A DNA stretch of 64,000 nucleotides from Octopus bimaculoides (lineage: Eukaryota), in assembly GCF_001194135.2 (NCBI RefSeq), contig NC_068993.1, positions 55,450,761 through 55,514,760 on the forward strand, read 5' to 3'. The notes below the pieces were generated by a model. It had not been told where the DNA came from, ran no database searches, and was given only the letters and a program-made list of their open reading frames with translations. Numbering within the stretch: position 1 is the first letter of the stretch; each line of letters begins with the position of its first letter. Below, piece after piece: positions 56,601 through 59,556 of the stretch. Both the position numbers and the translations under genes were made by a program.

Positions 56601-58738
56601 GCAGGCAAGCTATTTTCTATCAGTGGGCTCTCTTAGAAAAGATTTACAATTTTTGGACGAAAGCATCATCATTTAACATCCCTTTTTCCATACTGGCATG
56701 GATTGGACAGGTCAACAGGTCAAGATGAGGAGGAGGGGAAGATGAGGACGAGGGGAAGATGAGGGGAGGGGAAGATGAGGTGGAGGGGAAGATGAGGAGG
56801 AGGGGAAGATGAGGAGGAGGGGAAGATGAGGATGAGGGGAAGATGNNNNNNNNNNNNNNNNNNNNNNNNNNNNNNNNNNNNNNNNNNNNNNNNNNNNNNN
56901 NNNNNNNNNNNNNNNNNNNNNNNNNNNNNNNNNNNNNNNNNNNNNNNNNNNNNNNNNNNNNNNNNNNNNNNNNNNNNNNNNNNNNNNNNNNNNNNNNNNN
57001 NNNNNNNNNNNNNNNNNNNNNNNNNNNNNNNNNNNNNNNNNNNNNNNNNNNNNNNNNNNNNNNNNNNNNNNNNNNNNNNNNNNNNNNNNNNNNNNNNNNN
57101 NNNNNNNNNNNNNNNNNNNNNNNNNNNNNNNNNNNNNNNNNNNNNNNNNNNNNNNNNNNNNNNNNNNNNNNNNNNNNNNNNNNNNNNNNNNNNNNNNNNN
57201 NNNNNNNNNNNNNNNNNNNNNNNNNNNNNNNNNNNNNNNNNNNNNNNNNNNNNNNNNNNNNNNNNNNNNNNNNNNNNNNNNNNNNNNNNNNNNNNNNNNN
57301 NNNNNNNNNNNNNNNNNNNNNNNNNNNNNNNNNNNNNNNNNNNNNNNNNNNNNNNNNNNNNNNNNNNNNNNNNNNNNNNNNNNNNNNNNNNNNNNNNNNN
57401 NNNNNNNNNNNNNNNNNNNNNNNNNNNNNNNNNNNNNNNNNNNNNNNNNNNNNNNNNNNNNNNNNNNNNNNNNNNNNNNNNNNNNNNNNNNNNNNNNNNN
57501 NNNNNNNNNNNNNNNNNNNNNNNNNNNNNNNNNNNNNNNNNNNNNNNNNNNNNNNNNNNNNNNNNNNNNNNNNNNNNNNNNNNNNNNNNNNNNNNNNNNN
57601 NNNNNNNNNNNNNNNNNNNNNNNNNNNNNNNNNNNNNNNNNNNNNNNNNNNNNNNNNNNNNNNNNNNNNNNNNNNNNNNNNNNNNNNNNNNNNNNNNNNN
57701 NNNNNNNNNNNNNNNNNNNNNNNNNNNNNNNNNTATACATTTTATCTTTTACTTGTTTCAGTCATTTAACTGTGGCCATACTGGGGTACCACCTTGAAGA
57801 ACTTTTAGTTGAATGATGAATCCACTCTAGTACTTATTATTTGTTTTTTTTTTTTTGTAAGCCTGGTACTTATTCTAATGGTAAGTACCAGGTACTTATT
57901 TAGAGCCAGTCCATCGGCACTGGCAACAATCTTGCTCGAATGTCTTTTCACGTGCCACTGGCACAAGTGCCAGGGAGGCGACCGCTTATTTGCACAAACA
58001 TTTCACATACAGTAGAAGATACTCACACACTGAGTCAATTAAATATTATAGTTTCTCTTCTCTCATAAATCTGATCTAATGATTTAATGGATTGCTTCAG
58101 AGTTGAACTTATAGCAATACATAATCCATGAAATATTCTTGTCTGATTTTGGATCTTACTTTTTCATATCAGAGTAGAAAGCCCTGCAAAACTCTTGGAA
58201 CTGCCCCTCCTCCTTTAACTTACAAAAAAGAAAAATGAGTCTTCATGATTATTGCTATCTCTGAGATGATTAGGAGAACTGTAAGATATTGGTACTAATT
58301 TATAATCATGAACACAAAAATTGCCTGCAGACTACATGAAGATGTCTTTCATTAAAAATTTATACTAGTTTTTAATGTTGAATGTCATAAAAATTGTCAT
58401 AATCCTGCCAATGCTAGATAAATGAAGTTTCATAATTTTTTTTATTGGTCATCCATATAAGAGAGATTTCAAATTTATTCTATATTTTTATATTAAATTT
58501 ACCTCCCTAACACTTGGAAAACTTCAGACCATTTTATGAGGGAAATAAAATTTTAAGACAATTATTCTTAGGACTAAGAGCAGACTTAAAGGAAACTTTA
58601 TTCAAATGTTAAATATCAGAAAAAGTGAAAATATCTTGGTTGCTTCTCCTAAAACTGAGAATGATTATTCTTAAAATTCTAATAAAATCTCTAATGAACA
58701 TACCGGTTTTGGTGAGTTTTCGTCGATTTTTGCTCCAT
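30467..58738 (-). CDS. DNAI4: Dynein axonemal intermediate chain 4 (WDR78), WD40 subunit of inner-arm dynein f; 23 coding exons, about 763 aa
   Basis: Manual splicing gives a continuous ORF (2292 nt) with GT-AG introns and matching phases. Peptides match DNAI4 as I recall it: [116 protein letters not shown]. Exons 1-2 are the least certain. Confidence 0.95.
31127..31210 (-). CDS. DNAI4: DNAI4 exon 22 ([28 protein letters not shown])
   Basis: tttgcag/gtaagg, 84 nt. Confidence 0.96.
31536..31623 (-). CDS. DNAI4: DNAI4 exon 21 (LDPIIHYSP...CVSFAKNSE)
   Basis: ttttcacag/gtatgt, 88 nt. Confidence 0.95.
32234..32331 (-). CDS. DNAI4: DNAI4 exon 20 ([32 protein letters not shown])
   Basis: cattacag/gtaagt, 98 nt. 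Confidence 0.96.
32760..33070 (+). mobile_element. Near full-length tRNA-headed SINE
   Basis: A-box-like TGGCTGAATGG and B-box-like GAGTTCGATTCCC followed by the core seen at 625-850. Confidence 0.75.
33092..33410 (-). mobile_element. Tc1/mariner transposase C-terminal remnant with terminal repeat
   Basis: Minus strand [38 protein letters not shown]; CAGGGTGTTT terminus next to TA. Confidence 0.7.
33910..34038 (-). CDS. DNAI4: DNAI4 exon 19 ([30 protein letters not shown]...FFSSI)
   Basis: attccag/gtaagt, 129 nt. Confidence 0.97.
35638..35725 (-). CDS. DNAI4: DNAI4 exon 18 ([29 protein letters not shown])
   Basis: ctttccag/gtaagt, 88 nt; near-identical to the family motif. Confidence 0.97.
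37065..37197 (-). CDS. DNAI4: DNAI4 exon 17 (DMMHLRR...[18 protein letters not shown])
   Basis: ctttttcag/gtaagt, 133 nt, phase 1 to 2. Confidence 0.94.
38037..38194 (-). CDS. DNAI4: DNAI4 exon 16 ([17 protein letters not shown]...[21 protein letters not shown])
   Basis: ttttcag/gtgggt, 158 nt, phase 2 to 1. Confidence 0.96.
39104..39177 (-). CDS. DNAI4: DNAI4 exon 15 ([24 protein letters not shown])
   Basis: atttccag/gtaaga, 74 nt, phase 0 to 2. Confidence 0.95.
41125..41400. repeat. ~35-40-bp minisatellite running into an assembly gap
   Basis: gaactttccaggaagtaattc..cccct units, about 7 copies. Confidence 0.8.
41676..41753 (-). CDS. DNAI4: DNAI4 exon 14 ([26 protein letters not shown])
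   Basis: gtttcag/gtaggt, 78 nt. Confidence 0.96.
42338..42424 (-). CDS. DNAI4: DNAI4 exon 13 ([29 protein letters not shown])
   Basis: tttcaaag/gtaagg, 87 nt. Confidence 0.97.
42616..42963 (-). mobile_element. Young tRNA-derived (Arg-like head) SINE
   Basis: Minus strand GGAGGCGCAATGGCCCAGTGGTTAGGGCAGCGGACTCGCGGTCGGAGGATCGCGGTTTCGATTCCC with A and B boxes, no CCA, continuing into a repeat body; near-identical fragment at about 46288-46340; body related to about 14400-14500. Confidence 0.85.
43020..43530 (+). mobile_element. Mariner transposase N-terminal remnant
   Basis: [20 protein letters not shown]...WHKRF...[10 protein letters not shown]...[14 protein letters not shown], broken by frameshifts. 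Confidence 0.8.
44393..44529 (-). CDS. DNAI4: DNAI4 exon 12 (VDSSEAEE...[27 protein letters not shown])
   Basis: cgctag/gtgagt, 137 nt; start of the WD40 region. Confidence 0.96.
44857..44899 (-). pseudogene. Degenerate partial duplicate of DNAI4 exon 12 3' end
   Basis: 41/43 identical to 44392-44434; TGG to TAG stop; donor lost; truncated by gap 44900-45733. Confidence 0.7.
45837..45939 (-). CDS. DNAI4: DNAI4 exon 11 ([34 protein letters not shown])
   Basis: tttcag/gtgagt, 103 nt; strong motif match. Confidence 0.96.
46366..46496 (-). CDS. DNAI4: DNAI4 exon 10 (GSDILKST...DEVILQ)
   Basis: ttttctcag/gtaaat, 131 nt, phase 1 to 0. Confidence 0.82.
47238..47712 (+). mobile_element. 5'-truncated RLE-type non-LTR retrotransposon (R4/Dong-like) 3' end inside a (TAA)n tract
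   Basis: 47238-47354 encodes ..[32 protein letters not shown]; (TAA)n at 47193-47237 and 47701-47712. Confidence 0.7.
48545..49760 (-). mobile_element. Decayed APE-endonuclease non-LTR (CR1/Jockey-like) remnant
   Basis: [22 protein letters not shown] resembles the N-terminal NIRGLRSNF..LFLTETQ; GYFNIHN resembles GDFNxH; many stops. Confidence 0.55.
49939..50061 (-). CDS. DNAI4: DNAI4 exon 9 ([10 protein letters not shown]...GSRKSE), variable linker
   Basis: aatttcag/gtagag, 123 nt open, phase 1 to 1; little homology. Confidence 0.7.
51330..51640 (-). mobile_element. RTE LINE reverse-transcriptase remnant
   Basis: [20 protein letters not shown] and [33 protein letters not shown] (QG and YADD-region motifs). 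Confidence 0.85.
51892..51958 (-). CDS. DNAI4: DNAI4 exon 8 ([22 protein letters not shown])
   Basis: ttattccag/gtaagt, 67 nt, phase 0 to 1; WDMYD resembles WDLYD. Confidence 0.92.
52442..52549 (-). CDS. DNAI4: DNAI4 exon 7 ([24 protein letters not shown]...KHL)
   Basis: tttcag/gttagt, 108 nt; resembles NRLGNDLYVERMMQTFN. Confidence 0.95.
52977..53155 (-). CDS. DNAI4: DNAI4 exon 6 (VVEKSES...KETETF...RNALYHE)
   Basis: tttacag/gtaaag, 179 nt, phase 1 to 0; strong motif match. Confidence 0.93.
53222..53693 (+). mobile_element. RLE-type non-LTR retrotransposon (R4/Dong-like) 3' end with (TAA)n tail
   Basis: ORF with [46 protein letters not shown] = restriction-like endonuclease C-terminus; tail 53649-53693. 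Confidence 0.85.
53962..54038 (-). CDS. DNAI4: DNAI4 exon 5 ([25 protein letters not shown])
   Basis: ttttccag/gtatta, 77 nt, phase 2 to 1 as required; RSIF resembles RSVL. Confidence 0.8.
54951..55012 (-). CDS. DNAI4: DNAI4 exon 4 ([21 protein letters not shown])
   Basis: ttttctccag/gtaagt, 62 nt, phase 0 to 2; GPFSR resembles GQFTR. Confidence 0.85.
56293..56376 (-). CDS. DNAI4: DNAI4 exon 3 ([15 protein letters not shown]...EAVT)
   Basis: tgtag/gtaagt, 84 nt; resembles human VFDINGTDVTPRPL. Confidence 0.88.
56722..56845. repeat. ~18-bp purine-rich tandem repeat (gaagatgaggaggagggg) entering a gap
   Basis: Directly visible units. Confidence 0.85.
58224..58278 (-). CDS. DNAI4: DNAI4 exon 2 ([18 protein letters not shown]), phase 2 to 0
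   Basis: cttacag acceptor, gtaagt donor, 55 nt bridges the phases of exons 1 and 3; no homology support. Confidence 0.5.
58704..58738 (-). CDS. DNAI4: DNAI4 exon 1 ([12 protein letters not shown]), phase 2
   Basis: caagATGG start, donor CCG|gtatgt, next to a CpG-richer promoter; no homology support. Confidence 0.6.
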
Positions 58739-59528: not shown

Positions 59529-59556
59529 CTCGGTGGCAGCGATTCAAGCAGCCCAG
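59529..59556 (+). CDS. MIER1: MIER-family coding exon 2: LGGSDSSSP, phase 1 end
   Basis: tttcgtttcatttcag acceptor and CCCAG|gtaagt donor; 28-nt exon ending SSSP-G mirrors the short PSVESSSP / ASFGSSSP exon of vertebrate MIER1/MIER3 (recalled). Only 14 codons of evidence in total. Confidence 0.6.

Follow-up and report, generated by a model that had tools for sequence, protein, structure and literature searches.

The DNA analyzed here is a 64,000-nucleotide stretch of the genome of Octopus bimaculoides (contig NC_068993.1; hereafter the window), in which DNAI4, a gene for an axonemal dynein intermediate chain, and MIER1, a gene for a chromatin corepressor, lie head-to-head. Their coding starts are 463 nt apart when measured to the conserved MIER start codon and 457 nt apart when measured to the annotated one. 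The same pair in the same orientation is found in distant phyla on both sides of the protostome-deuterostome split, and in the five invertebrates that keep it four motifs, which an earlier sequence-only reading of this locus did not mention, sit at near-fixed positions relative to the MIER ATG. Our preferred explanation, to which we assign a probability of about 0.8, is that the DNAI4-MIER pair is ancient and has been kept because a unit of ~340 bp between the genes would act as a compact bidirectional promoter.

Identity of the two genes

The coding features of the locus, in window coordinates, are these:

30503..58738, minus strand: in-window part of DNAI4 (WDR78, an IC138-type axonemal inner-arm dynein intermediate chain), from PDB search and tblastn
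58704..58738, minus strand: predicted first coding exon of DNAI4, 35 nt (11 residues plus 2 nt), phase 2, donor GTATGT, by direct reading
58739..59195, no strand: putative divergent intergenic promoter region, by its position between the two ATGs
59196..59216, plus strand: MIER1 coding exon 1, with the annotated start at 59196 (MKMAEGN), the conserved start at 59202 (MAEGN) and donor gttagt
59217..59528, plus strand: MIER1 intron 1, 312 nt
59529..59556, plus strand: MIER1 micro-exon 2, 28 nt, LGGSDSSSP plus 1 nt, ending in phase 1

The sequence-only reading had reported two plus-strand micro-exons about 460 bp from the DNAI4 ATG and had taken them for the beginning of a MIER gene; its coordinates, splice sites, peptide and ATG-to-ATG gap are all confirmed base for base by direct reading. 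From the conserved start, exon 1 is 15 nt long (59202-59216, plus strand) and reads ATGGCGGAAGGCAAC before its donor gttagt, and micro-exon 2 reads CTCGGTGGCAGCGATTCAAGCAGCCCAG between tttcag and gtaagt. What was overlooked is a second in-frame ATG, 6 nt before the conserved one (59196, giving MKMAEGN), which is the start used in public cephalopod models.

The identification of these exons as MIER rests on annotated cephalopod proteins. All 120 matches listed from an earlier MIER homologue search, made with a chimeric octopus/human query, were vertebrate, with no cephalopod among them, and the invertebrate MIERs were reached via a representative sequence library and then with a bivalve MIER as query. 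This bivalve query, which carries the window peptide, retrieves Octopus sinensis MIER1 isoforms X5 and X2 and Argonauta hians MIER1-like isoform X4, and all three octopod proteins start MKMAEGNLGGSDSSSPDNRDQDFAPT…YDDERTLEEEE, that is, with both micro-exons followed by the MIER acidic region. The N-terminus of O. sinensis and Argonauta MIER1 reads MKMAEGNLGGSDSSSPDNRDQDF…DDERTLEEEE (the same start is also given as MKMAEGNLGGSDSSSP). The 14-residue peptide of the window is identical to this N-terminus, with the peptide of micro-exon 2 forming residues 8-16 of the cephalopod proteins, and Argonauta matches both micro-exons, splice sites included, at every nucleotide. As a match between sequences, this is far beyond chance.

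The proteins that open in this way have the further hallmarks of the family. The MIER N-terminal motif, MAE…SSP followed by DFxP…(D/Y)DDExT(L/M)EEEE, is present in O. sinensis and Argonauta, which continue DNRDQDFAPT…YDDERTLEEEE, and the same acidic-region motif occurs in at least 25 invertebrate MIERs. In Pfam comparisons O. sinensis MIER1 scores 39.6 bits for ELM2 (cut-off 21.7) and 28 for MIER1_3_C (cut-off 27), and its Myb/SANT hit of 20 bits is under the 24.4 cut-off, yet at the expected position. Possession of ELM2, SANT and MIER1_3_C is established through these orthologous octopod proteins, as the exons concerned lie outside the window. At the Argonauta locus, which was reached via a DNAI4 fragment, the upstream gene on the opposite strand encodes a 523-amino-acid (aa) protein with ELM2 and MIER1_3_C; the orthologous ATG opens its coding sequence and lies 440 nt from a first exon of DNAI4. 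The claim that the micro-exons begin a MIER gene is thereby upheld, since annotated cephalopod MIER1 opens with the same peptide and continues through the acidic region, ELM2, a SANT-like region and MIER1_3_C, and so is its corollary that the octopod MIER ortholog lies beside DNAI4 rather than elsewhere. The N-termini that the sequence-only reading gave for the vertebrate proteins also agree with database sequences: a primate MIER1 starts MAEPSVESSSPGG, and a database representative that matches the MIER3 N-terminus starts MAEASFGSSSPVG. By its N-terminal sequence, then, the plus-strand gene is the single-copy cephalopod MIER gene, MIER1. Cephalopod models of it are already in public annotation. 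MIER1 is an ELM2-SANT corepressor, and in vertebrates it recruits HDAC1/2 through its ELM2-SANT region.

With exons of just 15-21 and 28 nt, and with exon 3 not found in the window, it could be argued that the micro-exons match by chance in an open frame, or are artefacts of annotation, and that octopus MIER1 starts further downstream. This we consider barely credible, given that two octopods with independent annotations have identical peptide and splice sites and that the annotations of the bivalve, brachiopod, hemichordate, starfish and teleost genes show the same two-exon layout (MAE, then x…SSP, then phase 1). For the splicing of the micro-exons the support lies in gene models and in conservation between species. 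The homologue of micro-exon 2 ends …SSP|G, followed by gtaagt, in phase 1 in the bivalve Mactra, the brachiopod Lingula, the hemichordate Ptychodera and the starfish Patiria; in the teleost Albula it ends one codon later in the same phase. In the other phyla exon 1 is ATGGCGGAG followed by gtaag. Octopods have 6 nt more in this exon, and a shifted splice donor (GAAggcaac, then gttagt) appears to be the cause. By our own count, MIER intron 1 measures ~275-313 nt in all five pair-keeping invertebrates and 1.2-1.3 kb in Albula and Patiria; cross-phylum alignment finds no sequence similarity in this intron between phyla, its length alone being alike. For annotation, the lesson is that cross-phylum comparison can place first exons of 15-28 nt with confidence.

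Further MIER exons were not found in 59557-64000 by tblastn with O. sinensis MIER1 as query, and exon 3 lies either past the window end or inside the run of N at 61938-62415. The window contains many runs of N bordered by (TA)n or (CA)n microsatellites, for example at 13065-13520, 22690-23270, 40240-41120, 44900-45740, 56860-57740 and 61938-62415. The assembly is a draft with gaps, and such runs could conceal exons of either gene, including MIER exon 3 in the last of them.

On the minus strand, open reading frame fragments located from ~30.5 to 53.2 kb translate into WD40 and dynein intermediate-chain sequence. The best match of the concatenated exon translations in a PDB search is human DNAI4 in the axoneme structure 8j07 (8j07_k2; E=3.6e-68), with weaker matches to Chlamydomonas IC138 (2.1e-40) and DNAI1 (5.6e-33), and in tblastn the two halves of the Argonauta DNAI4 gene model give collinear exon matches running from 53189 down to 30503. 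On the strength of these matches the minus-strand gene is DNAI4. Under the name wdr78 it has been treated as a motile-cilia-specific gene (PMC4728341). Its start ATG at 58738-58736 opens ATGGAGCAAAAATCGACGAAAACTCACCAAAACCG, which is followed directly by the donor GTATGT. A tiny, K/S-rich, phase-2 first exon is also present in the annotated DNAI4 genes of Mactra, Lingula and Ptychodera, and by our own reading a similar one can be placed in Argonauta (MDTKSVKP…) and Albula; the octopus exon 1 is thus a prediction from direct reading combined with cross-phylum likeness. No octopus DNAI4 model was among the 12 fragments returned by a DNAI4 homologue search.

The pair across animals

Ten taxa were compared, and the loci other than that of Octopus were mostly fetched around MIER genes with 10-kb flanks. 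Outside the octopods, the upstream neighbors of MIER and their distances between coding starts are as follows:

Mactra (bivalve): opposite-strand DNAI4, 838 aa, 375 nt
Lingula (brachiopod): opposite-strand DNAI4, 845 aa, 408 nt
Ptychodera (hemichordate): opposite-strand DNAI4, 827 aa, 459 nt
Albula (teleost): opposite-strand DNAI4 (a truncated 576-aa model), 2.5 kb as annotated and ~760 nt to the first exon as we would place it
Patiria (starfish): opposite-strand Brix-domain gene, 900 nt
Priapulus: opposite-strand TRAM/LAG1/CLN8 gene, 171 nt
Nematostella: opposite-strand HMG-CoA synthase gene, 1081 nt
Limulus: no upstream neighbor within 10 kb

The identity of the neighbor as DNAI4 was confirmed by tblastn in Mactra, Lingula, Ptychodera and Albula, and in the three invertebrates also by PDB search; the N-terminal regions of the Mactra and Ptychodera neighbor proteins match DNAI4 and IC138 only. 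In the MIER loci of Patiria, Priapulus, Nematostella and Limulus, tblastn over the 10-kb flanks found no DNAI4. A listing of open reading frames failed to confirm N-terminal DNAI4 exons in the Albula gap, and the 760-nt distance is accordingly our estimate. The gene order in Albula is DNAI4 (minus), MIER1 (plus) and then, on the far side of MIER1, a TPT-family gene resembling SLC35D1. The human genes, which we take to be divergent neighbors at 1p31.3 with SLC35D1 beyond MIER1, are presumably the same two orthologues in the same head-to-head arrangement, with the same tiny ATG-bearing exon 1 followed by an SSSP micro-exon ending in phase 1. Albula differs from the invertebrates in its larger gap and in having none of the motif positions described below.

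Adjacency of the same two genes thus extends over Mollusca (two classes), Brachiopoda, Hemichordata and Chordata. With the pair present in protostomes and deuterostomes alike, the simplest account is a single origin before the two lineages split, followed by several losses. The sequence-only reading had proposed a bilaterian-ancient pair, and this is supported if losses are allowed for: three lophotrochozoan lineages (the cephalopods, Mactra and Lingula) and two deuterostomes (Ptychodera and Albula) keep it, and the arrangement is not universal, as Patiria, Priapulus, Limulus and Nematostella have it broken. For an origin before the Bilateria there is no support, the pair being absent in Nematostella, the sole cnidarian sampled.

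Where DNAI4 is not the neighbor, in Nematostella, Patiria and Priapulus, MIER still has a close head-to-head partner, and it may be that the MIER promoter is inherently bidirectional. From this it could be supposed that such a promoter captures neighbors, and that the pair originated independently in lophotrochozoans and deuterostomes; every examined taxon but Limulus has a close divergent MIER partner, and that partner varies among the taxa with a broken pair. Repeated capture would nevertheless have had to bring in the same partner, DNAI4, in five lineages spanning the split, at 375-463 nt from ATG to ATG in the invertebrates, with a shared phase of the DNAI4 first exon. It would also have had to produce the positions of the X-box, ATTGG, CCAAT and CCCATAAT motifs that are common to Ptychodera, the octopods and Mactra, and, for all but CCAAT, to Lingula. 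We regard independent origin as very unlikely and favor a single ancestral pair.

Several side observations concern the DNAI4 loci of other mollusks. In Argonauta ~6.5 kb lie between the DNAI4 exon 1 that we would place and the start of the annotated DNAI4 model, which is itself split into two gene models of 374 and 287 aa. This stretch (positions ~9540-9990 and 4800-9500 of the locus) holds a tandem array of ~30-nt units (acattactaaacacacctct…) and repeated transposon-like segments. A locus of Mytilus galloprovincialis proved by tblastn to be an inverted duplicate of DNAI4 fragments, and was set aside as uninformative on MIER. At 12671-19369 (plus) and 29831-23307 (minus) it carries mirror-image copies of the same DNAI4 exons, tail to tail, which are probably an assembly or haplotype artefact, and its 233-aa gene model is a chimera of distant exons.

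Conservation and motif positions between the genes

The other features of the locus are these:

58801..59711, no strand: Octopus-Argonauta conserved non-coding block, taking in the promoter region, both micro-exons, intron 1 and the start of intron 2
58865..58879, no strand: X-box-like (RFX-type) site GTTGCTATGAGATAC, with a good first half-site and a poor second half
58904..58911, minus strand: CCAAT box in the DNAI4 sense (CTGATTGG on the plus strand)
59103..59107, plus strand: CCAAT box in the MIER sense
59183..59190, plus strand: CCCATAAT, an initiator-like core element, at whose A (59186) a transcription start would give a 16-nt 5' untranslated region (5'UTR)
59198..59209, plus strand: TISU-like or YY1-like element GAAAATGGCGGA, which contains the conserved MIER start codon

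Between the two octopods the block at 58801-59711 aligns with positions 3376-2466 of the Argonauta locus at 85.4% identity over 918 nt, and identity reaches ~93% across 59100-59690, MIER intron 1 included. The DNAI4 coding exons in the same comparison reach 71-74%, below the conserved non-coding block. A second block, 59803-60238, aligns with Argonauta positions 2302-1853 at 67%, and, simple repeats aside, no other non-coding alignment was found in the 12 kb compared. An Rfam scan of 58600-60300 returned a chance DicF hit alone (E=0.52), so that no family in that scan explains the conservation. The observed/expected ratio of CpG is 0.81 in the intergenic region (58739-59201), 0.00 in the adjacent first DNAI4 intron (58000-58700) and 0.88 in MIER intron 2 (59557-61900), which looks like a CpG-retaining, probably unmethylated, island beside a CpG-depleted gene body.

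Within this region the positions of the motifs relative to the MIER ATG are shared across phyla. The half-site GTTGCT of the X-box-like element is at -337 in Octopus and Argonauta, -331 in Lingula and -344 in Ptychodera, and Mactra has a fuller X-box, GTTGTCACTAGCAAC, at -335; by its likeness to the consensus, this element could be bound by RFX factors. The inverted CCAAT box, ATTGG (mostly CTGATTGG), is at -295, -295, -294, -289 and -293 in Octopus, Argonauta, Mactra, Lingula and Ptychodera respectively, and CCAAT in the MIER sense is at -99, -99, -98 and -101 in Octopus, Argonauta, Mactra and Ptychodera. The position of CCCATAAT is -19 in all of the five pair-keeping invertebrates except Lingula; there it is -18, as it also is in Patiria, which has a broken pair. 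Octopus and Lingula are identical at 27 of 29 nt over -36 to -9. The composite CTGATTGG-N(180-200)-CCAAT-N(70-80)-CCCATAAT recurs exactly in Argonauta and Ptychodera. The distal motifs are absent from the broken-pair loci and from the teleost Albula.

How often such positions arise by chance was gauged with 20,000 dinucleotide-preserving shuffles per species. Each anchor falls at its position in at most 2% of shuffles (~1% per species for the X-box anchor, 1-2% for the inverted CCAAT and ~1e-4 for CCCATAAT), and three or more anchors do so in 0 of 20,000 per species, figures which are indicative only, as the anchors and tolerances were picked after the sequences had been viewed.

We infer that CCCATAAT may mark the MIER transcription start. 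It was also considered as a ZNF143/Staf site, of which only the TCCCAnAAT core fits the consensus, the 3' half being a misfit, and an initiator appears the better reading. The element that follows it, GAAAATGGCGGA, departs from the mammalian TISU consensus SAASATGGCGGC (PMC3177215) at positions 4 and 12 and agrees with it at 10 of the 12, and its ATG is the start codon that the phyla have in common. Lingula, Ptychodera, Albula and Nematostella retain AAnATGGCGG (the MIER of Nematostella starts CAAAATGGCGG), and Mactra (…GCGAC) and Patiria (…GCCG) are one base off. The combination of initiator and TISU-like element would make 59202 a likelier start codon than the annotated 59196.

A proposed bidirectional promoter

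These positions enable us to propose a model in which the region consists of two back-to-back core promoters, with different inputs, within a single nucleosome-free region. Two opposed CCAAT boxes ~195 bp apart, as NF-Y-type sites, would frame that region, and their spacing suggests a structural constraint. On the DNAI4 side, the X-box-like site would provide cilia-specific RFX input, together with the CCAAT box in the DNAI4 sense. On the MIER side, a sense CCAAT would be followed by the initiator-like CCCA(+1)TAAT, where transcription would start 16 nt before the ATGGCGG of the TISU/YY1-type element. An initiator held 16 nt ahead of a TISU-type start codon would explain both the tiny MIER exon 1 and the conserved MAE N-terminus. 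A chromosomal breakpoint anywhere inside the unit would damage at least one of the genes. The sequence-only reading had put both genes on one promoter, and this is too strong a statement, as the layout suggests separate inputs, an X-box for DNAI4 and an initiator with TISU for MIER. Whether the whole arrangement (X-box, ~40 bp, inverted CCAAT, ~195 bp, CCAAT, ~80 bp, initiator, 16 nt, TISU) has been held nearly to the nucleotide since before the protostome-deuterostome split is a more demanding proposition, which we advance tentatively and at somewhat less than even odds.

Several points weigh against a promoter-based constraint. In 4 of the 10 sampled taxa the two genes are not paired, which means that any constraint is not absolute, and Albula keeps the pair without any of the anchors, from which it follows that the motif layout is not required for adjacency. 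Lingula is without CCAAT at the -99 position, the octopus X-box has only one good half-site, and the anchors were, as noted, chosen with the sequences in view. MIER from exon 3 onward is outside the window. Every regulatory role in the model comes from motif resemblance. Finally, the functions of DNAI4 and MIER are unrelated and their breadth of expression probably differs, which argues against simple co-regulation.

Some of these points are what would be expected if the pair were ancestral and had been kept by inertia alone, with independent promoters and no functional link, the ~400-bp gap simply being a tiny target for breakpoints. Inertia would accommodate the losses in Patiria, Priapulus, Limulus and Nematostella, the adjacency kept in the teleost without conserved motifs, the functional unrelatedness of the two genes and the other head-to-head neighbors of MIER at broken pairs (the Brix, TRAM/LAG1 and HMG-CoA synthase genes, at 900, 171 and 1081 nt respectively). 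It leaves unexplained, however, why motif positions should be near-fixed over ~340 bp in four independent lineages, and why, albeit in a small sample, the CCAAT motifs at -99 and -294 are missing exactly where the pair is broken. We consider inertia unlikely, though it is the strongest of the alternatives, and prefer retention through a compact bidirectional promoter.

Ancient bidirectional pairs are an established class, to which DNAI4-MIER appears a well-supported addition. Irimia et al. 2012 (PMC3514665) describe ancient 5'-to-5' pairs such as HSPD1-HSPE1, with short conserved intergenic sequence, and attribute these signatures to shared cis-regulation. DNAI4-MIER resembles this class in that unrelated genes are arranged 5'-to-5' across phyla with a conserved intergenic sequence of less than 1 kb; the orientation is head-to-head, and the distance is placed below 1 kb by proxy only, the 463 nt being counted from ATG to ATG and not between transcription starts. 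HSPD1 and HSPE1, by contrast, are coupled in function and co-expressed; between DNAI4 and MIER no functional link is known. Among the papers searched, none describes the DNAI4-MIER pair or its promoter, although a prior listing in the supplementary lists of Irimia et al. 2012 is possible; the portions of the supplements of two cephalopod/metazoan microsynteny papers that were consulted name neither DNAI4 nor MIER.

The two halves of the proposed promoter also have known counterparts. TISU elements occur within ~30 nt of the transcription start, double as YY1 sites and drive translation from 5'UTRs of a median 12 nt (PMC2518114, PMC3177215). The MIER start resembles those of TISU genes in lying within GAAAATGGCGGA, and the initiator-like motif fixed 16-19 nt upstream would fit very short 5'UTRs; in contrast to TISU itself, defined in mammalian genes, what is seen here is a sequence resemblance in invertebrates. 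On the other side, as in RFX-regulated ciliary genes, a GTTGCT(A/T)… half-site, or the fuller X-box of Mactra, is located 41-127 nt upstream of the DNAI4 ATG, and, unlike the canonical X-box, only that of Mactra nears the palindromic consensus. The X-boxes of ciliary genes usually sit at such a distance upstream of the gene.

Cephalopod genomes are heavily rearranged, and the gene pairs that survive in them point to real constraints on gene order. DNAI4-MIER is a clean example, with functionally unrelated genes lying head-to-head ~400 bp apart in mollusks, a brachiopod and a hemichordate, and within 2.5 kb in a teleost. The cross-phylum conservation of promoter motif positions is unusual and testable, and is the part likeliest to interest specialists; the locus may serve as a model of the way in which bidirectional promoters keep tissue-specific and housekeeping output apart, and may inform on the age of the initiator-plus-TISU arrangement. 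If the proposed layout is correct, it would be a rare case of promoter architecture conserved across phyla, and TISU-type initiation from very short 5'UTRs would predate the Bilateria, because the Nematostella MIER start has the same form. It would also provide a natural system for studying how one nucleosome-free region can serve both a cilia gene with tissue-specific expression and a chromatin regulator that is expressed broadly.

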